Sequence record: MT446416.1
Reading direction: 5' to 3' (one strand)
DNA: 21,635 bases
The position numbers were made by a program, and so were the translations under genes. The first letter of the stretch is position 1. Every line of letters begins with the position of its first letter. Shown one piece after another: positions 4,371 to 13,273 of this stretch. The notes below the pieces were generated by a model that was not told the origin of the DNA, did not search any database, and saw nothing but the letters and a program-made list of their open reading frames with translations.

Positions 4371-7067
4371 TTACCAATTGATTGTTCCTGTTTGTGACGG
4401 TAGACCATAACTAACTGGGAATGAAGAACCAGCAGCTTCAAGCGACGCACCGAAAATATCCAATCTTGAACGTTTTTGTATGTTAACATTTGATATTTGT
4501 AGTGAGTTTGTTTGTATAGTACCTATCCAGAAAATATTATATGCTGTAGTACCAGTCTCTGAAATAACATCAGTTGTTATTACATATTTTGCATTACCTT
4601 GTTCCATTTTAACATATACATGAAATAATGTGTTTGCCGGATTAGCCTTAACTGTAGTTAAGTTTATACTAGTAATAGGTAATGTAAATGCTTTACCAGA
4701 AAGAATTACTGGAGTTTCTTCTGTGAAGTACACAATAAAACCTTGAGCAACGTCTTGTGAAACTACGTTAATCGGTGCACCTTGAGCAGTCCAGTTATTA
4801 TAATCAGCAATTGTAGTACCACATTTTTGGAAAGTCATTTTGTTTACATAGTCTATTGCTTGGAAATAACCAAAACCAATACCAGGTAAAGCTGCTGGTT
4901 GAATACCTTGCTCATAACTTGCATGTGAACCACTGATAATAAAACTATCAAATTGTGCAGTTGCTTTTGTTACATATGCTCTGAATTGGTGTGTGTTTGT
5001 ATTACCAATAGTTGGGTGAGATAATGGGTCAGAACCACCTATGAAGTAGAAAGAACCACCATCATATATTGTTAAACCAACAGAAGACGATGCAAAACTA
5101 CCATTACCATTTGGTGTAAAGTTACTTCCGTAAACGTTTTCTAGTACTAAACGCTTGAAGGTAATTGTAGTGATATTACCTGAACGTGTATTCACATTCA
5201 CTTCAGCAATTCTAATATAGTTCTGATATGTATTTGTAACTGTACTTAGCATTACGAATGCAGGTATATCAGTTTGTTGTGGAACAAACAATGTCATATC
5301 TTTATAAGCAGCAGGAGATAAGTTCCAGTCGCTTAGTACTTTAGCGTATTCAGCATTTCTGAAATTATCAAGTACTGATTGAGTAACACTAATGATACCA
5401 GTTCCGTTCATATTTTTATCATATGATAGTGATTGGGAATATCTCTGACCTACCATGAATATCCCACCATTTGTAGTAACATTATTACCACTAATGGAAC
5501 TAATAAAAACTCTGTTGTTAGTGTTATCTGTCACATTAGCACGTTCTGTTGTTGGCTCATAACCTTGTATGGTTCCACGTGATAAAGAATTAAACGTAAA
5601 GTTAGGAGTACTTTTATGAACTGCATAAGATGGACGGAATGCACCAGAACCAGTTGAACGAGAATACTGTTTAGTACTGTTCCCTGGAAGCAATTCTACT
5701 CCGTTAATAAAAGAACCAACTGCTGAACCAAATGAAGGACGGACTATACCATTTCTGAAATCAGTTGAAATGTTCGCACGTACATTGATCATGCTATATA
5801 TTGATTGCGAAGTAAATTTAGCTTTCTGCATAAGTAATGGTTCTGCTAAGTTTGGACATGCAGTACAGAATACATCACCTGTATTCAGATAATAATATGA
5901 ACTGTAAATATTTCTTGCACCGTTATGGTCATATAACGGATCTTTGTTGAGAACATTACCAGTAGCAACCAATGCCGAACCTGTGTTTGTGACAACCAAT
6001 GGTGCAGCAAATGTACCAATATCGTTCCCAGTATCCAAGTTACATTGTTTAGTACTCATGTTAAAATTGAAACTATAACTATGCTGTGGTCGGGTATTGT
6101 AGTTTGCCATAGTGAACCATGCGTCACCATTCATTCTGAATCGGAAGTTCTGCGTTCCTGGCTCCTGAGCAACATATAAATCGATAGATGTCATATAAAT
6201 CCCCATACCAGCCAAATTTTGTGGTACATAGACATAGGGCTTATCAGCTATATTAGTTGAGTTAACATGGTCAGTAATGATTATATTATTCTGAGAAGTA
6301 TATGTAGTATTGTAAAAAGTTTTTGTTGTCCACCCCGTGATTCGGGTAGCAGTATAAGTACCGTTTGCAATATTCAACACAACACGAACAACAACAATCT
6401 GTAGTTTGTTATTTTCATTAAGGACGTTGAATACATAAACTGAACCGTCTTCTGCCATCATAGCATACTCAATCCCACCTTCAGGTGAAATATCAGCTTG
6501 GTTCACAAAAAGACCACTATGTTGTGTATCATCCAATGTACCATTCGTTACTGATATAAACAACCCATTAGTACTGGTAGATGTGTCATTGTAACGACCT
6601 AACAGTATTTTTGAATCGGTATTGTATAAACCAATAGCAACACGGTTTGCCCCGAAATAGCCAGGCTTATACTGACGGCTTGTATTAACAGTACGACTCA
6701 TATCGGTAACTGATAATGCGTTCGCTAGGTAAGAATAAAACAAACCTTCAACACTACCGTTTGTACCACTACGTAATAGTACTAATGTGCCATCGTTTTC
6801 TAAAAGTATTTTGTTTCTACGTTGGGATTGGTTTTCTGATGCACCATTAAAATCACCAGATACCCCAGCAGGTAGATAGTTATGTGTACCATAATGCGAG
6901 ATTGGAAGTAAACTAATTACATCAAGTAATTCTTCTTTGGAATATGTATCAATTTCCATATTACCATTAGCATCAAATACTTGATCATTGATGCCCTGTA
7001 CTGTTCTTTTCCCTTTAACTGTCACATTATGAGTGACGTCTAAGCCACCATATATTTTCTTTGACAT
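4371..7067 (-). CDS. Putative virion tail/baseplate fibre protein (898 aa), paralog family member
   Basis: Clear paralog of 1025..3754 (LRSGTNGSVEGLFY vs LRAGTNGSTEGYYY, VVSQDVAQGF, GSSFPVSYGLPSQTGTINW). Preceded by a late-promoter-like octamer. Confidence 0.7.
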   Translation of the reverse strand: MSKKIYGGLDVTHNVTVKGKRTVQGINDQVFDANGNMEIDTYSKEELLDVISLLPISHYGTHNYLPAGVSGDFNGASENQSQRRNKILLENDGTLVLLRSGTNGSVEGLFYSYLANALSVTDMSRTVNTSRQYKPGYFGANRVAIGLYNTDSKILLGRYNDTSTSTNGLFISVTNGTLDDTQHSGLFVNQADISPEGGIEYAMMAEDGSVYVFNVLNENNKLQIVVVRVVLNIANGTYTATRITGWTTKTFYNTTYTSQNNIIITDHVNSTNIADKPYVYVPQNLAGMGIYMTSIDLYVAQEPGTQNFRFRMNGDAWFTMANYNTRPQHSYSFNFNMSTKQCNLDTGNDIGTFAAPLVVTNTGSALVATGNVLNKDPLYDHNGARNIYSSYYYLNTGDVFCTACPNLAEPLLMQKAKFTSQSIYSMINVRANISTDFRNGIVRPSFGSAVGSFINGVELLPGNSTKQYSRSTGSGAFRPSYAVHKSTPNFTFNSLSRGTIQGYEPTTERANVTDNTNNRVFISSISGNNVTTNGGIFMVGQRYSQSLSYDKNMNGTGIISVTQSVLDNFRNAEYAKVLSDWNLSPAAYKDMTLFVPQQTDIPAFVMLSTVTNTYQNYIRIAEVNVNTRSGNITTITFKRLVLENVYGSNFTPNGNGSFASSSVGLTIYDGGSFYFIGGSDPLSHPTIGNTNTHQFRAYVTKATAQFDSFIISGSHASYEQGIQPAALPGIGFGYFQAIDYVNKMTFQKCGTTIADYNNWTAQGAPINVVSQDVAQGFIVYFTEETPVILSGKAFTLPITSINLTTVKANPANTLFHVYVKMEQGNAKYVITTDVISETGTTAYNIFWIGTIQTNSLQISNVNIQKRSRLDIFGASLEAAGSSFPVSYGLPSQTGTINW

Positions 7068-7100
7068 ACATATCCCTTGTAATTTAGATATTAGTTACTG

Positions 7101-7108
7101 TATTTATG
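7101..7108 (-). promoter_or_regulatory. T4-like late promoter variant CATAAATA upstream of the structural cluster
   Basis: One mismatch to T4 late consensus TATAAATA. Lies between the nrdG terminator and the first structural gene. The same octamer occurs at 9422 and 11216, both non-coding. Confidence 0.6.
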
Positions 7109-7116
7109 AATGTACT

Positions 7117-7139
7117 AAAAAAGCACCCATTGGGTGCTT
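7117..7139 (-). terminator. Intrinsic terminator after nrdG
   Basis: AAGCACCC-AAT-GGGTGCTT followed by TTTT. Confidence 0.8.
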
Positions 7140-7143
7140 GTGT

Positions 7144-7614
7144 TTAAAAGTCTTTATTTTTATATAAAATTCGTTGGTTATTTGAACCACGAAAAGGTAA
7201 TGTTAAATTCTTTTCTTCTGAAACAAATTTACCATCAACTAATACATCTAAGTACTGAAGAATGTCTTTAGCATGATTATCCATAATCTCTTCTAACGTA
7301 TATCCACTCCAGCACCAAATAGTTTTATTGGGATAAGTCTCTTTTACAATCTTACATAGTTCTAAAATTGTTTCTATGTTCTTTTTCATTAGAGGATCTC
7401 CACCAAGGAGGGATAATCCACTAACGTAAGGCTTACTGAGTTCAGCTAAAATTATATCAATTGTATCAGTACTGAACTCTTGTCCACTTCGGTAGTCCCA
7501 TGCATGTTCTGAGTAACATCCGGGGCATCCATGTGAACAACCGCTTACGAAAAGTGAACATCTAACACCTTCACCATTTATCAAATCATCTTTGAAAATT
7601 GCCATATAATTCAT
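7144..7614 (-). CDS. nrdG: Anaerobic ribonucleotide reductase activating enzyme (radical SAM)
   Basis: NGEGVRCSLFVSGCSHGCPGC (CxxxCxxC), GLSLLGGDPL, DVLVDGKFV, RGSNNQRI. Confidence 0.97.
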   Translation of the reverse strand: MNYMAIFKDDLINGEGVRCSLFVSGCSHGCPGCYSEHAWDYRSGQEFSTDTIDIILAELSKPYVSGLSLLGGDPLMKKNIETILELCKIVKETYPNKTIWCWSGYTLEEIMDNHAKDILQYLDVLVDGKFVSEEKNLTLPFRGSNNQRILYKNKDF

Positions 7615-8540
7615 TTAATATTCCTTACTAGGTTATTTAAAATCTCCACATGGTTTTCATCATAACGTATTCTGATAAACTGTATATTATTGTCTATACA
7701 GAACTTTGTTTTTATATTGTCATTAATTTGTCTATTAATAAATTCTTTCTCCCCTCCCCAATGTTCAAAAATTTCATAATGTTGTTTACCATCATATTCT
7801 ATTAATATATTATAATCATTCAAATATATGTCAAATGGTAATTTTTGTTTGTTGTAACATTCAGGGAATTTTTTTTCTCGTTCAAAAGATATATTATTTT
7901 TTGTCAATATTTCAATTATATCATACATAGCTTTTGATGTGCTAGTATGTAACGCACACTCTGGGCATCCTCTTCCTGAGTTTAATGATGTTGGTGTAAT
8001 ATTAAATTCATGACCTTTTTCACAAATTGCAATACTAGGAGTTCTTACATTTATATATTTGAATTTATTAAAATTGTAATCTTTGAATTTATTATTTGAT
8101 TTTATTTTTGATATAAAATAATCTGAATCAATATTATGTTTTCTCCCATTTTTCATTTTACAAAGTTCACATCCAGTATTTCCTCTCAAGAAGGTTCTTG
8201 CTCTCAATGTTTTGGATTTTTTATGGATATTACACATAACTGTTATATTATCAACCATGCGAGTATAATCACTGATTAGTGTGAATTTATCTCCATAAAT
8301 TTTATTCATTTCTTGTATGAATTCATATTTTGATTTTGTTATTTTATTATCAGAACATTTTTTACAGCCCTTCCCACTTAAAAGTATATTTGGTGTTGAA
8401 TAAAAATCCGTTTTACATATGTTACAGTGGACATGTATTTTACATTGTGACCCGCCGTATTCATTTAAAAATGTGAATTTTTGTCCATGTATTAACAAAA
8501 TCTTATTAATGAATTCTTCATGTGTAAGTTTACGTGGCAT
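7611..8540 (-). CDS. Free-standing putative homing endonuclease: three Zn-binding repeats plus C-terminal Vsr/DUF559-like PD-(D/E)xK nuclease (309 aa)
   Basis: Three ~63-aa repeats each ending GCxxC (GCKKC, GCELC, GCPEC), then LPFDIY...ILIEYDGKQHY. Start moved from 8597 to ATG 8540 because of SD AAAGGAG. Stop overlaps the nrdG start (ATGA). Confidence 0.8.
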   Translation of the reverse strand: MPRKLTHEEFINKILLIHGQKFTFLNEYGGSQCKIHVHCNICKTDFYSTPNILLSGKGCKKCSDNKITKSKYEFIQEMNKIYGDKFTLISDYTRMVDNITVMCNIHKKSKTLRARTFLRGNTGCELCKMKNGRKHNIDSDYFISKIKSNNKFKDYNFNKFKYINVRTPSIAICEKGHEFNITPTSLNSGRGCPECALHTSTSKAMYDIIEILTKNNISFEREKKFPECYNKQKLPFDIYLNDYNILIEYDGKQHYEIFEHWGGEKEFINRQINDNIKTKFCIDNNIQFIRIRYDENHVEILNNLVRNIK

Positions 8541-8550
8541 TATTAAAACT

Positions 8551-8585
8551 CCTTTGACATTTGTGATGTTTATAAATGCCAAAGG
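8551..8585 (-). promoter_or_regulatory. RBS-sequestering hairpin containing late-promoter-like TATAAACA, upstream of the free-standing endonuclease
   Basis: CCTTTGGCATTT pairs with AAATGTCAAAGG (12 bp, one G.U); the 3' arm includes AAAGG of the SD. TATAAACA at 8574-8567. Confidence 0.7.
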
Positions 8586-8597
8586 GTATATCCTCAT

Positions 8598-8924
8598 TTA
8601 ATTATCGTCTGGTAATTCATCTAGTATTGCACTCACTATTTCAACGAGAACATCACCATGACATGATTTTGGTTTACAGAAACAACCAAGACGTTTCCCT
8701 GCTAATTCAAGTAAATCATCAATTTTAACTTCGCCATTAGAAATACGTTCAATTATGTATTCTCTGAACTTTTCGATTGATTCTTCCCTTGTAGCAACAA
8801 TGAACTCGGCCTTAGTCTGTTTATCATTGATATGGGTAAATGGGTTACCCCATTTAGACCCACGACCAATGTACACATCATACGGTTCTTTGTATTTGTT
8901 AACCACAATTGGCTTTAAATCCAT
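8598..8924 (-). CDS. DUF4326 family protein
   Basis: YIGRGSKWGNPF and LGCFCKPKSCHGDVL motifs. ATG at 8924 overlaps the grcA stop (TGATG), SD AAGGA. Confidence 0.85.
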   Translation of the reverse strand: MDLKPIVVNKYKEPYDVYIGRGSKWGNPFTHINDKQTKAEFIVATREESIEKFREYIIERISNGEVKIDDLLELAGKRLGCFCKPKSCHGDVLVEIVSAILDELPDDN

Positions 8925-9283
8925 CAAATTTCCTTTGTAAAGGTACGAGAAATTACATCATCTTGTTGTTCTTTTGTTAGTGAATTGAAACGAACAGCAT
9001 AACCACTAACACGAATAGTAAGTTGCGGATACTTTTCTGGATTGTTTTGTGCATCAATGAGTTGTTCTTTAGATAAAACATTTACATTCAAATGTTGACC
9101 ACCCTCAATAACTGGTTCATGTTTGACCTGTACATCACGTAGAACCTCACCATCAAAAGTACTCAATAGTACTTCATCATCTTCGGAAAAAGTTTTAGAT
9201 ACTACAATTTTTACAACATCATCTTCTTTTAGAAAAATAGTACCACGATGTTCACCTGACATTACCTGTTTAGCTTCTAACAT
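8924..9283 (-). CDS. grcA: Autonomous glycyl radical cofactor (GrcA/YfiD-like)
   Basis: GGQHLNVNV...[34 protein letters not shown] glycyl-radical signature. Confidence 0.95.
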
Positions 9284-9320
9284 ATATTTCTCCTTAATTT
9301 TATTTCAGTGTTTTTTTAAT

Positions 9321-9329
9321 ATTCTATCA
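9321..9329 (-). promoter_or_regulatory. Possible extended -10 promoter for grcA
   Basis: TGA-TAGAAT about 40 nt upstream of the ATG; no convincing -35. Confidence 0.4.
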
Positions 9330-9350
9330 TCAAACGATATTTTATAAACA

Positions 9351-9382
9351 AATGAACAAAAAAAATAGATTCTTTGTTCATT
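9351..9382. repeat. Inverted repeat (10-bp arms)
   Basis: AATGAACAAA (9351-9360) and TTTGTTCATT (9373-9382). Confidence 0.75.
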
Positions 9383-9404
9383 TTTTCATTTCATAATTAG
9401 TTTA

Positions 9405-9439
9405 CTCGATTTAATTTTAAATATTTATGTTAAATCGAG
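9405..9439. repeat. Inverted repeat (10-bp arms) with CATAAATA in the loop
   Basis: CTCGATTTAA (9405-9414) and TTAAATCGAG (9430-9439). No U-tract on the coding strand. Confidence 0.75.
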
Positions 9440-9446
9440 ACAATTA

Positions 9447-10310
9447 TTATAAATGGCGAATTCTCTGAATCACTTCATCTTGCTTTCCTTTATTGAATGG
9501 GCGACTATTTGGTGCACTAAGATATCCGCTAACTCTTCGAATAACTGACATAGATTTTTCATCTCTATTATTACAAACTGGACAGTGGAAACCGTTTTTA
9601 TCGACGCTGAATTCACCTTCAAAATTACATTTATGACAATGATCAACTGGCTGGTTTATTCCAAAATATGGAATTTTTTCATAGGCATAATTGATTAATG
9701 TTTCAAGTGCTTGAATGTTGTTTGTTAAGTTTGGTGTTTCGACATAGCTAATATTACCACCATTGCTTAGATAAGCAAAGTTTTCCTCATAATCCCACTT
9801 TTCAAAAGCAGAACTTTCAACCCATACTGGTTGATGGAATGAATTTGTAATATAATTACGTTTTAGTACTGAAGGGTACTTAGATTCGATGCAACGTGCA
9901 AATTTGTAGCAAAGTGACTCTGCTGGGGTTCCATATAGACTAAAAGCTATGTTACTCTCTTTTTTGAACTCATCGCATTTAACTTTCATATAATTCAGTA
10001 CTGACATACAAAACTCCTTACTGATAGAACCAGTGAGGATTTCTGAACATTCAACAAGTCCAACATAACCAATACTAATACTAGCATAACCATTGTAAAA
10101 TAGTTTGTCAATAGTTTCTTCTGCACCTAAACGTGCTAATGCACCTTCCATGAACAAAATTGGATTCTGTTTCGCTTTAGTGCCTTTTAAACGCTCTACA
10201 CGGTTCATCTGAGCACGATATGCAATATTCATATGCTCATCTATCTTATCAAAAAACTCTCCATCTGAGGCACTTTCAAGAGCAATTAACGGTAGGTTGA
10301 TTGAGACAAC
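9447..10310 (-). CDS. nrdD: Anaerobic (class III) ribonucleotide reductase, exon 2
   Basis: Begins VVSINLPLIALES, which continues GRFNLG of exon 1. Contains SLYGTPAESLC, YITNSFH, Zn ribbon CHKC...CPVC and glycyl loop RRVSGYL. Confidence 0.95.
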   Translation of the reverse strand, partial: VVSINLPLIALESASDGEFFDKIDEHMNIAYRAQMNRVERLKGTKAKQNPILFMEGALARLGAEETIDKLFYNGYASISIGYVGLVECSEILTGSISKEFCMSVLNYMKVKCDEFKKESNIAFSLYGTPAESLCYKFARCIESKYPSVLKRNYITNSFHQPVWVESSAFEKWDYEENFAYLSNGGNISYVETPNLTNNIQALETLINYAYEKIPYFGINQPVDHCHKCNFEGEFSVDKNGFHCPVCNNRDEKSMSVIRRVSGYLSAPNSRPFNKGKQDEVIQRIRHL

Positions 10311-10354
10311 CATTTGTACCTTCACTTTCATGAAGGATTAGAGTACACCATACT

Positions 10355-11194
10355 CTAACGAAGAGGAAATGACATATAACCAAGTTTATTTGATAGTTCT
10401 TTATATCCAGAACCGTTATTGATATTTGCAACAGTTTTTCTTCCTACATTTAAACATTTTGCAATTTCGGAATAATTTTTATCTGTATTAATTAGCATAT
10501 CAATAATCTTAGAAACTGTTTTAATAGAATGACGTTTTGATGAATTTTGTGGTTTAAAAATTGGGTATTCAAGTGATTTATTTCGATAGATTACTCCATT
10601 ATTAACATTACAAATGGTGACATTTGAAACATTATATATTTTTGCAATTTCTATACTAGAAACACCATTTCTTAATAACTCATAAATTGAATCTATATTA
10701 TCTTCAATCTTATTTCTTTTGTTATCTCTAATAGGGTATGTTTCATTTATTTGATACCAAGTTTCGCCACAATTTATATCACTAACACAGCCGTATGGGA
10801 CATTTAAAGTTTTTGCTATTTCTACAAATGAAAGATCTTTATGTGATTTGATATATTCTATAATTTTGATAGCATCAATTTCAGTTATTTTACTTCCATT
10901 GAAGGTTTGGTTACCACCTAATGTTGAGTTGTAACCATTCTTATAACTATCATAAATTTCAATATATTTTATTTCTTCATCATTAAGATTATTTAAATCA
11001 ATATTAGTTTTTAAAATTTGAAATGTAAAATTTTCAAAGCCAAATTTTTTAATAGCTTTACTAATACATGATTTTTCATCATTGTTGTTACAGTGTTCCA
11101 CCCATCTTTTCATCGGTGGATATAAAACAGTTTGTCCAATATAAACTTTATTAGTTACTATACACTCTATTTTATATATGCTTCCTTTTCTCAT
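10355..11194 (-). CDS. Intron-encoded GIY-YIG homing endonuclease with three C-terminal HTH repeats
   Basis: SIYKI...VYIGQT...KRW..H...E..YI...GYNSTLGG nuclease domain, then three repeats of EIAK..NV.....DIN.G. SD GGAGG. Confidence 0.92.
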   Translation of the reverse strand: MRKGSIYKIECIVTNKVYIGQTVLYPPMKRWVEHCNNNDEKSCISKAIKKFGFENFTFQILKTNIDLNNLNDEEIKYIEIYDSYKNGYNSTLGGNQTFNGSKITEIDAIKIIEYIKSHKDLSFVEIAKTLNVPYGCVSDINCGETWYQINETYPIRDNKRNKIEDNIDSIYELLRNGVSSIEIAKIYNVSNVTICNVNNGVIYRNKSLEYPIFKPQNSSKRHSIKTVSKIIDMLINTDKNYSEIAKCLNVGRKTVANINNGSGYKELSNKLGYMSFPLR

Positions 11195-11200
11195 TATATA

Positions 11201-11227
11201 TCCTCCATAAAATATTATTTATGGAAG
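11201..11227 (-). promoter_or_regulatory. RBS-sequestering hairpin with late-promoter-like CATAAATA, upstream of the intron endonuclease
   Basis: CTTCCATAAA-TAATAT-TTTATGGAGG forms a 10-bp stem burying GGAGG. CATAAATA at 11223-11216. Confidence 0.8.
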
Positions 11228-11483
11228 TTTTAATATTAGAGTCACGTATTATACTCGTTGAACCTTCCACCATTCTAAAATGATAGCTTGGCTGCTGATT
11301 TCCCATTTTTTGTGCATATGAACTGATTTACAACTTTTCATATATCCATAATTCTTTTTTCTACTCTCGTAACATTCACGTTTATCTATTAAGATTGCGT
11401 TGTAGTGATTATGGCTTTAGGGGGTTCCAGCATGTTAACGTGTTTGCTATTACTGCTCACGCAGCAAAGGGGCATGTATGTCT

Positions 11484-12425
11484 ACCCAAGTTGAAACGAC
11501 CGTTATATTGCTCATTTCCATTTGAATCTTCCCATTTTCCTAAGAATGAACGACAGCCCATCGGTGTTACAGCAGTGCTATTACTTCCCGTCACTTTGTG
11601 ATTTAATGGAACTGAAACAAAGTCTGGGTAGATTCTCTTCGATGCACAACGCATTGCCAACTGTTTCATGTCATAGTTGCAATCATCGCTATTCATGTTG
11701 ATTCCGTCCTGTAAAAAGAAAATTACTTTAGGAAACACTGGAGTAATCTTATCTTTGCCTAAACCATTCTCATGTACTTTTAAGTACTGTTCAGTGATTA
11801 ATTTGCCAAATTTTGAAGTATTCAGTCCTAAACTAAGAGAAATGAATGCTGCTTGTCCGTTTGTACTAATCATTGAATTTGTCTGGTAAAGTAAGGTTTG
11901 ACACCCATCATAGACTTCTTTTCGTAATTCTTCCTCAATGTATTCAGTACTGAGATTATATGCCTTTTGCTTCGCTAATAGCTTATCCCACGACTTTTGG
12001 ACGTAAGGTTCAAGACCAACGTCAATATGAGCCAATGATTGACCACCGTACTGGGAACTAGCAACAGCCTGAACAATTTGTGTCAGTACTGTACATGCTA
12101 CACTAAAACTCTTTGGTTCTTCAATTTTTGCACAACCAATGGTAAATCCATTTTTTAGCATATCTGGGTAGTTAACCAAGCAACAGTTAGTTAATGGGCT
12201 GATATAGTAGTCTAAATCATGAATGTGACCATAACCATCATTATGCCACTGCATTAGCTCCTTTGGAATAACATCTTGTGAATAATGTTTAGATAGGATA
12301 CCAGCAAGTAAATCCCTGTGTGTATTGACGCATTTCGCATCTTTGTTTGCATTTTCATTTGTAAGATCAGTATTGCTCTGATTTAGGAAATTTGTTACGT
12401 CAGTATATAATTTATCTAATTGCAT
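11484..12425 (-). CDS. nrdD: Anaerobic (class III) ribonucleotide reductase, exon 1 (spliced product ~601 aa, no ATP cone)
   Basis: NENANKD, HIHDLDY, TNCCLV, SSQYGGQS, FPKVIF, YPDFVS, MGCRSFL (thiyl Cys) and GRFNLG. Start at MQLDK (12425) chosen from SD AAGGA. 314 + 287 codons. Confidence 0.95.
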
Positions 12426-12486
12426 TTTACTTTCCTTGTATTTTGAAATCATCTGGGGGTGAAGTTATTTAACATCACCAGACACC

Positions 12487-12528
12487 ATTATAGCGTCAGA
12501 ACAGGGTATTTCTCTTGATCTATATCAA
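12487..12528 (-). promoter_or_regulatory. FNR-type (class II) anaerobic promoter of nrdD
   Basis: Perfect FNR box TTGAT-N4-ATCAA at 12515-12528 and perfect -10 TATAAT at 12492-12487. Box centre 12521.5 is about -41.5 from a +1 near 12480. Confidence 0.85.
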
Positions 12529-12563
12529 GGAAAGGTCACATTGCTTTTTATTTGCACAAATAG

Positions 12564-12586
12564 AAAAAGCACCTCTAGGGTGCTTT
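12564..12586 (-). terminator. Intrinsic terminator insulating the nrdD promoter
   Basis: AAAGCACC-CTAGA-GGTGCTTT followed by TT; stem nearly identical to the one after nrdG. Confidence 0.8.
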
Positions 12587-12701
12587 AAAGTACTGCTAAT
12601 ATAAAAACTGCCCAAATTAGCAGTACTACATTGGTTGGAGCGGCAAAAAACATATATGCAGCAAGTGCACTGCATCCGATTACAAGTTTAGCTAGTCTCA
12701 T
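12585..12701 (-). CDS. Small hydrophobic membrane protein (38 aa), missed by the ORF track
   Basis: MRLAKLVIGCSALAAYMFFAAPTNVVLLIWAVFILAVL*. GGAG 5 nt upstream, overlaps the previous gene end, fills the gap up to the terminator. Confidence 0.7.
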   Translation of the reverse strand: MRLAKLVIGCSALAAYMFFAAPTNVVLLIWAVFILAVL

Positions 12702-12873
12702 CTGGACTCCATGTAATAGTCACAGTAAATGTGCCTTCTTGGAAACCAAACTCATCTTGTGGGATTTGTCCAGCTAATGGGTTAAATCTTGAATCGAATG
12801 CTTCATGTACGTCTCGCTGAATATCATAGAGACTTTCACCATCGTATTCTTTTTTAAAGATTTCATTCTGCAT
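12688..12873 (-). CDS. Hypothetical protein (61 aa)
   Basis: Tightly packed co-oriented ORF. Confidence 0.7.
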   Translation of the reverse strand: MQNEIFKKEYDGESLYDIQRDVHEAFDSRFNPLAGQIPQDEFGFQEGTFTVTITWSPDETS

Positions 12874-13273
12874 TTATACGTACCGACCCTCGTATTCTGT
12901 CTGGATATCCATCAAATAGATCAATGAATTGGTTTAACGCATAAGTACTGAAGAATGGATTATTCTTTGCAATTTCTATGCGTTTTTCAATATCCATTAA
13001 TATAATCTCTGGTCTACTGAAATTACCTTTACGTCTATATGTTAGTAAACGCTCTTTGTGTCCTCTGAACTGAAATTCAAAATATGTTGATGATGTGTAA
13101 TCACTTCCATCAGGAATCGGAATTGAAAAATCAACATTGTACTTATAACCAATTGCGAAAAAATAACCACCATCTTCTAACGGTATAGTTGCATCATTTA
13201 GATGAAAATCGATTTCATCTCCTAACATATCAAATATTTTGGTACTTAGAGACATAAAATCATCGACTAACAT
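12863..13273 (-). CDS. Hypothetical protein (136 aa)
   Basis: Co-oriented ORF in a contiguous array. Confidence 0.8.
   Translation of the reverse strand: MLVDDFMSLSTKIFDMLGDEIDFHLNDATIPLEDGGYFFAIGYKYNVDFSIPIPDGSDYTSSTYFEFQFRGHKERLLTYRRKGNFSRPEIILMDIEKRIEIAKNNPFFSTYALNQFIDLFDGYPDRIRGSVRINAE

Follow-up and report, generated by a model that had tools for sequence, protein, structure and literature searches.

A conserved FNR-type palindrome upstream of nrdD in RaK2-like jumbo phages suggests control by the host oxygen sensor

The window analyzed here comprises bases 1-21635 of the genome of Escherichia virus TH47 (MT446416.1; 352,450 bp), a RaK2-like jumbo phage of the genus Asteriusvirus; 601 bases surrounding the palindrome described below agree with that record at 100% identity and in coordinates. 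The genes around the upstream region of nrdD, which encodes the anaerobic ribonucleotide reductase, an oxygen-sensitive enzyme of deoxynucleoside triphosphate (dNTP) synthesis, all lie on the minus strand. In front of nrdD we found an exact TTGAT-N4-ATCAA palindrome that is probably a functional site for the host oxygen sensor FNR, through which the gene would be activated. The palindrome precedes nrdD in 20 of 20 distinct RaK2-like sequences, and so does the late-promoter core TAAATA, at a fixed distance from it. On this comparative evidence nrdD is probably under dual control, by oxygen through FNR and by the phage late program. The elements of the region are listed below.

12559..12586, minus strand: intrinsic terminator (AAAGCACCCTAGAGGTGCTTT plus T-rich tail), ends the upstream operon
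12515..12528, minus strand: FNR box TTGATATAGATCAA, exact match to TTGAT-N4-ATCAA
12487..12492, minus strand: sigma-70-type -10 hexamer TATAAT, 22 nt past the box
12466..12471, minus strand: TAAATA, late-promoter core, 43 nt past the box and 46 nt before the nrdD ATG
12458..12479, minus strand: inverted repeat GGTGA...TCACC around TAAATA, candidate 5' hairpin

Conservation of the palindrome

Read along the minus strand, the box consists of TTGAT (12528..12524), ATAG (12523..12520) and ATCAA (12519..12515). Its arms lengthen by one complementary pair (C12529 and G12514) to CTTGAT/ATCAAG, giving a palindrome at 12514..12529, and the sequence at 12530..12514 reads CC-TTGAT-ATAG-ATCAA-G. A first-pass annotation of this DNA had described the same perfect box with the same extended arms. 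In TH47 and in all relatives the half-sites have the core of an FNR site (TTGA) and not that of a CRP site (GTGA). No CRP box (TGTGA-N6-TCACA with up to two mismatches) was found in 12396..12620, and no NrdR box was found in that interval by a scan that recovers the known E. coli K-12 sites. A GATC Dam site lies inside the TH47 box (12517..12520, minus strand); the commonest box variant, TTGATCTAGATCAA, accounts for 9 of the 20 distinct sequences and holds two GATC sites.

We compared the nrdD upstream regions of 12 relatives from GenBank, drawn from Asteriusvirus (EC.P1, 121Q, ph0011, A4, JNE01 and EJP2), Alcyoneusvirus (K64-1 and KP13-7), Eneladusvirus (fHe-Yen9-04, Serratia BF and Erwinia pEa_SNUABM_12) and Mimasvirus (GAP32). 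IMG/VR was scanned with an NrdD alignment, which yielded 12 further jumbo-phage loci and 68 non-jumbo nrdD loci. TTGAT-N4-(A/G)TCAA precedes nrdD in all 12 GenBank relatives and in all 12 jumbo-phage loci from IMG/VR, with the box center 81.5 to 97.5 nt before the nrdD ATG across relatives. Conservation was scored on the 20 distinct RaK2-like upstream sequences, which represent the four named genera and metagenomic contigs. TTGAT and TCAA were 100% invariant in this set, fixing 9 of the 10 specified positions, and the tenth base was A in 70% and otherwise G. By comparison, the 91 columns outside the motifs had a mean identity of 61%, and pairs from different lineages were only 27-51% identical there. 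Because position and conservation hold while the flanks have diverged to near-random similarity, we judge the box not to be a chance occurrence. The phylogenetic footprint in the alignment is clear and falls precisely on the defining bases of an FNR site, which answers the question, raised in the first-pass annotation, of whether related phages keep the box.

Outside the jumbo phages, 58 of the 68 nrdD loci from IMG/VR had no FNR-like box within 300 nt upstream. These box-less loci include all of those on contigs of 158-235 kb, the size range of T4-type genomes (for example, Aeromonas phage Aeh1). Two other candidates were rejected: in the Vequintavirus FFH2 nrdD overlaps the upstream gene, and in the Justusliebigvirus ECGD1 the upstream open reading frame (ORF) contains the FNR-like box, which precedes a terminator.

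The hosts named in the phage records (Escherichia, Salmonella, Klebsiella, Cronobacter, Serratia, Erwinia and Yersinia) are all Enterobacterales, and these genera are facultative anaerobes that possess FNR. RaK2 DNA is reported to be methylated and to lack hydroxymethylcytosine and glucosylation (PMC3622015); given the absence of the latter two modifications, a host factor should be able to read the phage DNA. The first-pass annotation was correct that the host orthologue is under FNR control: nrdDG of E. coli and Salmonella is activated by FNR and repressed by NrdR (work by Boston and Atlung in 2003 and by Roca and colleagues in 2008, as cited in PMC4009431 and PMC2892513). The phage promoter is predicted to place the same enzyme system under the same oxygen sensor. 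Such gating would be physiologically sensible, because oxygen inactivates NrdD and these phages also carry the aerobic NrdAB (PMC3622015).

An A/T-rich block, TTTGT(G/A)CAAATAAAAAG, lies within 12531..12560 (minus strand), at a distance of 15-30 nt on the upstream side of the box. Asteriusvirus and Alcyoneusvirus conserve it in part, and (G/C)(A/T)AAACGTT(A/G)A occupies the equivalent place in Eneladusvirus and Mimasvirus. The block may act as an UP-like element or belong to a promoter of another type.

Core promoters and competing explanations

FNR-activated class II promoters of E. coli, such as nirB, narG and the synthetic FF-melR, carry the FNR site near -41.5. In TH47, the box center (12521.5) would fall at -41.5 if transcription starts 7 nt after the TATAAT hexamer, at the predicted position 12480. 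Candidate -35 hexamers at spacings of 16-18 nt match TTGACA at just 1-3 of 6 positions, and a sigma-70 consensus scan called no promoter at the TATAAT region or overlapping the box. The perfect -10 and the lack of a good -35 noted in the first-pass annotation are borne out, and the spacing would fit the class II geometry proposed there, given a start at 12480. The phage promoter resembles the E. coli class II promoters in its 14-bp TTGAT-N4-ATCAA site, the 22 nt to a good -10, the missing -35 and the anaerobic function of the gene. It differs from them in that its start and its FNR dependence are predicted, in the late-promoter core at a fixed distance, and in its setting within a virulent jumbo-phage genome that has phage sigma factors. 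The class II arrangement with TATAAT appears to be the best-fitting core promoter in TH47. In such a promoter, FNR already present in the host would hold its [4Fe-4S] cluster under anoxia, dimerize and bind the box, which would stand in for the missing -35 of a sigma-70-type promoter.

The terminator between the box and the upstream operon, also predicted in the first-pass annotation, has a stem at 12586..12566 with 8 pairs, 4 of them G-C, followed by TTCTATTTGT. The stem overlaps the stop codon of an ORF for a 38-residue membrane protein (12585..12701). The same terminator is present in K64-1, and terminators upstream of the box align across Asteriusvirus and Alcyoneusvirus. This element would stop read-through, so that nrdD transcription from the TATAAT promoter would depend on FNR. 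The TATAAT hexamer is perfect in 13 of the 20 distinct sequences and stands 22 or 23 nt after the box; its retention in several lineages with differing flanks indicates selection on TATAAT. Eneladusvirus, Mimasvirus and related metagenomic lineages are organized differently. Their -10 is degenerate (TATTAT, TATTTT, TTGAAT or TTTTTT), they have no terminator upstream of the box, and the spacer between box and TAAATA holds a terminator-like hairpin, ATACCCC-N7-GGGGTAT plus a T run. An example is GAAATACCCCGTTATATGGGGTATTTT in GAP32 (L012 1381..1407), and the hairpin is also found in Serratia BF, fHe-Yen9-04 and three metagenomic contigs (L034, L038 and L090).

TAAATA lies 21 nt downstream of TATAAT in TH47. 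The motif and its 43-nt spacing from the box are invariant in all 20 distinct sequences, with the box center 50.5 nt before the T of TAAATA, and the distance from TAAATA to the ATG varies from 31 to 47 nt. Box, TAAATA and the 43 nt between them are conserved in every lineage; where the hairpin occupies the spacer, the total length is still 43 nt. Throughout the TH47 genome the motif is associated with gene starts. Of 203 copies, 79 are found on the coding strand no more than 120 nt ahead of a gene start, with a peak 30-40 nt from the ATG, and the genes that follow include those for the major head protein, tail sheath, tail fibers and other virion proteins. ATAAATA was found upstream of 36 TH47 genes (3.9 expected) and TAAATAA upstream of 37 (5.5 expected). 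The copy before nrdD matches 6 of the 7 positions of ATAAATA, the preceding base being T or G (TTAAATA/GTAAATA). We rejected TAAATA as a sigma-70 -10 element because the final T is absent and the genomic distribution fits a late-promoter core. In the relatives CBB and GAP32, ATAAATA has been predicted as a T4-like late promoter, and a gp55-like sigma factor has been reported for CBB (PMC5259590). The motif and its distribution make it most probable that nrdD is served by a second promoter too, one run by the phage program and situated 21 nt past the FNR-type promoter. This late-type promoter would either add a further layer of control or itself be subject to FNR. The proposal in the first-pass annotation that oxygen sensing operates rather than a fixed temporal program is not supported, since an invariant late-promoter core, which that annotation did not list, precedes nrdD.

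At many TAAATA cores in TH47, TATAAT or TATA appears 3-4 nt further on (TAAATAtagTATAATg; e.g., L025 38780..38820). Late promoters of this phage thus seem to have a consensus in two parts, of which the nrdD copy lacks the second. TTCACC, right after TAAATAA, is fairly conserved. The arms of the inverted repeat around TAAATA differ in sequence yet still pair in JNE01, K64-1 and contigs L038/L090, and they are weak or absent in ph0011, L032, L033 and L035. Transcripts that begin at the upstream start could carry the repeat as a 5' hairpin. An Rfam scan of 7000..13000 found no relevant conserved RNA element.

Several observations weigh against an FNR-dependent sigma-70 promoter in front of nrdD. 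The occurrence of an exact box is by itself not significant, with 0.21 copies expected per window and at least one in 17 of 100 shuffles (boxes with up to one mismatch: 4 found, 2.98 expected), and the case rests on comparison. In addition, the strictly kept distance is that from the box to TAAATA, not to TATAAT. Because the Eneladusvirus/Mimasvirus -10 is degenerate and a hairpin occupies the spacer, the unit that all lineages keep cannot be a class II sigma-70 promoter. These phages also encode their own RpoD-like sigma factor (PMC11895373, PMC5259590), which makes it uncertain which holoenzyme would read TATAAT. Finally, the tblastn search of the 352-kb TH47 genome with E. coli FNR and CRP, which found no homologue (best E = 1.7), could miss remote homologues or unrelated phage DNA-binding proteins.

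The conserved spacing raises the question of which core promoter FNR would serve. T4 late promoters start about 6 nt after the late motif. Transferred to TH47, this spacing gives a start near 12460 and centers the box near -61.5, where class I activators classically sit and from where FNR could act on the TAAATA promoter through the C-terminal domain of the RNA polymerase alpha subunit. Provided that the palindrome is a functional FNR site, we regard this class I arrangement as possible though doubtful; TATAAT would then be secondary or lineage-specific. The arrangement would explain why the 43-nt spacing is exact in every sequence whereas TATAAT shifts by a nucleotide and the TAAATA-to-ATG distance drifts, and why the Eneladusvirus/Mimasvirus type keeps box and TAAATA around a hairpin without a good -10. 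The genomic behavior of the motif as a promoter core of virion genes argues in the same direction. Conversely, the persistence of a perfect TATAAT in 13 sequences from several lineages indicates selection there too, the nrdD copy is not the commonest form (ATAAATA) and lacks the downstream TATA common at late promoters, and the value of -61.5 presumes the T4 distance from motif to start. Moreover, we know of no gp55-type holoenzyme that is activated by a host class I activator.

The other explanations concern the palindrome itself. A dimeric helix-turn-helix protein can bind to any palindrome of the 5-4-5 form, the majority of genes in these phages lack a known function, and the middle bases T, A and G of the N4 segment are conserved at 90%, 100% and 80% in the 20 sequences, which exceeds what FNR is known to need. 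The box might accordingly be read by a phage-encoded dimeric regulator or by a different host factor. We consider this improbable, because the invariant positions are exactly the FNR-specific TTGA...TCAA, no CRP/FNR homologue was detected in TH47 in the search described above, and the gene downstream is the very one that FNR controls in the host. The rarity of the motif points the same way: the whole TH47 genome (352 kb) has 5 exact boxes, only 2 of them just upstream of a gene start, and we rejected a role as a general phage promoter element on this count. FNR could also bind and act negatively or architecturally, as a roadblock that backs up the terminator or by repressing a promoter that the box overlaps. 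The Eneladusvirus/Mimasvirus layout, with the box upstream rather than downstream of the terminator-like hairpin, speaks for this idea. It is nevertheless very unlikely, given that the box lies upstream of both candidate core promoters, at distances suited to an activator, and covers neither a -10 nor a start, and that no sigma-70 promoter overlapping it was found. Least credible of all is that the box matches by chance or is a relic without function that has travelled with nrdD. An exact box in a window of 21.6 kb is not unusual, and about five occur in the genome, but chance does not account for nine invariant positions among neighboring bases that are 27-51% identical, nor for the fixed distance to TAAATA, and a relic is at odds with the lack of any sequence or layout in common with the E. 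coli nrdDG promoter. We favor activation of nrdD by host FNR. The idea, first advanced in the first-pass annotation, that the phage senses anoxia through this host protein is well supported by comparison, through consensus, geometry and conservation; FNR binding, the start sites, dependence on oxygen and fnr, the direction of regulation and the core promoter that FNR serves are predictions from sequence.

Relation to known systems and other candidate sites

The nrdDG promoter of E. coli K-12 has two imperfect FNR sites (TTGAGCTACATCAA and TTGATGCAAAGCAC), two NrdR boxes and a long leader, whereas the phage nrdD promoter has a single, perfect FNR site, lacks NrdR boxes and is followed by a leader about 55 nt long. 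We rejected capture of the host promoter, since the region upstream of E. coli nrdD differs in layout and has no evident similarity to that of the phage; the phage wiring thus looks independent. Compared with T4-type phages, the nrdD/nrdG pair is a shared feature, often with an intron or a homing endonuclease, but the T4-type loci lack an FNR-like box. T4-type late promoters (TATAAATA) are gp55-dependent, lie about 10 bp before the start and precede late (virion) genes. The invariant TAAATA before nrdD is the core that precedes the TH47 virion genes and in this respect resembles them, although it is preceded by T or G and not by A, and fixed-spacing coupling to a host activator site is no known feature of T4 late promoters. 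Sites for a host regulator in phage genomes have a parallel in the CtrA boxes of phages that infect Alphaproteobacteria. In both cases sites for a global host regulator would let the phage read the physiological state of the host. Regulator, signal and type of phage are different, and here a single metabolic operon of a lytic phage is concerned.

A second exact box, TTGATCTAGATCAA (also listed as AAAATTGATCTAGATCAATTTTT), lies outside the window at 136765..136778 of the TH47 genome (L026 15130..15143). It lies 68.5 nt before the gene for a 78-residue membrane protein, which one record annotates as 'immunity to superinfection'. JNE01 keeps an exact box at the same place (L031 403..416) in a region that is only 75% identical. 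TAAATA follows the box after 19 or 17 nt. From its position and conservation, the second box is a possible further member of a phage FNR regulon.

Similar elements were found upstream of nrdD in Phapecoctavirus, represented by Escherichia phage nepoznato (L113 640..790) and a phiWec179-like contig (L045 1090..1210). There a terminator is followed by a one-mismatch box (TTGATTTCCCTCAA or TTGATCCTGAACAA) and, after 22 or 21 nt, by TAGAAT or TAAAAT. FNR wiring of nrdD may thus recur, perhaps independently, in an unrelated group of coliphages, with two related sequences and imperfect boxes as thin evidence. A search of IMG/VR for more Phapecoctavirus loci gave four, and none was both new and informative. 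A more speculative scheme would combine a small FNR regulon of RaK2-like phages (nrdD and the 78-residue gene) with class I gating by FNR of transcription that uses a phage sigma factor, and possibly with independent wiring in Phapecoctavirus; we put it forward tentatively, as one that may well not hold.

The FNR-dependent promoter type is well known; its apparent location in a virulent jumbo phage is what is unusual. It is commonly assumed that virulent phages follow a fixed temporal program. A full-text literature search, itself incomplete in coverage, returned no prior report linking FNR with phage nrdD or with Asteriusvirus, and the genome papers of RaK2 and Sharanji, in which the word 'promoter' does not occur, describe none. 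If our reading is correct, a whole clade of lytic phages with genomes of 350 kb, infecting gut and plant Enterobacterales, reads host oxygen through the host's own sensor, and that signal decides the timing of an oxygen-sensitive enzyme of dNTP synthesis. This would amount to a clear example of lytic phages sensing their environment through a co-opted host regulator, and coupling of FNR to a phage late promoter would, if true, be more novel still. The fixed spacing to the late core also offers a way into late-transcription activation in RaK2-like phages, where neither gp33 nor gp45 homologues have been reported. The question is relevant to how phages replicate in the anoxic gut and to phage therapy at low oxygen levels, and it is directly testable in E. 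coli K-12, since the relative Sharanji grows on MG1655.

The nrdD transcription unit

The unit predicted to be under control of the box comprises nrdD, a grcA-like gene, a DUF4326 gene and nrdG. Its mapped components, with intervening elements, are as follows.

11484..12425, minus strand: nrdD part 1, codons 1-314, 99% identity by tblastn to the uninterrupted EC.P1 NrdD
10311..11483, minus strand: insert of 1173 bp in nrdD after codon 314, absent from EC.P1
9447..10310, minus strand: nrdD part 2, codons 315-600, 89% identity to EC.P1 NrdD
8924..9283, minus strand: GrcA/PFL-type glycyl-radical gene, 119 residues, Pfam Gly_radical (E = 1.1e-17)
7611..8597, minus strand: HNH-type free-standing homing endonuclease, 328 residues, PHROG 559 (E = 1.9e-67)
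7144..7614, minus strand: nrdG, radical SAM activating enzyme, last in the unit, Pfam Fer4_12 (E = 1.2e-51) and Radical_SAM

Translation of nrdD is predicted to begin at the ATG at 12425, with a Shine-Dalgarno sequence, AAGGA, at 12433..12437. The insert carries an ORF for a homing endonuclease with GIY-YIG and helix-turn-helix domains (10355..11194), and a late-type motif, CATAAATAAT, precedes this ORF at 11221. The upstream exon ends in ...GGU and the insert in ...AAUG, as at group I intron splice sites. Rfam gave no group I match; we consider the insert probably a group I intron. Alternatively, nrdD may be a gene in two pieces, as the second part has its own in-frame ATG at 10331.

The ORF of 119 residues adjoins the 3' side of nrdD, is absent from EC.P1 and ends in a glycyl-radical motif of the PFL/GrcA type. 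Its product looks like a phage 'spare part' glycyl-radical protein. The motif CATAAATAT lies 144 nt upstream of this ORF, at 9427. The HNH endonuclease gene, also absent from EC.P1, sits between the DUF4326 gene and nrdG. Its 3' end holds TTTAAATAAC 25 nt before the nrdG ATG, and the same 9-mer (TTAAATAAC) occurs before nrdD; this motif may restore a promoter for nrdG.
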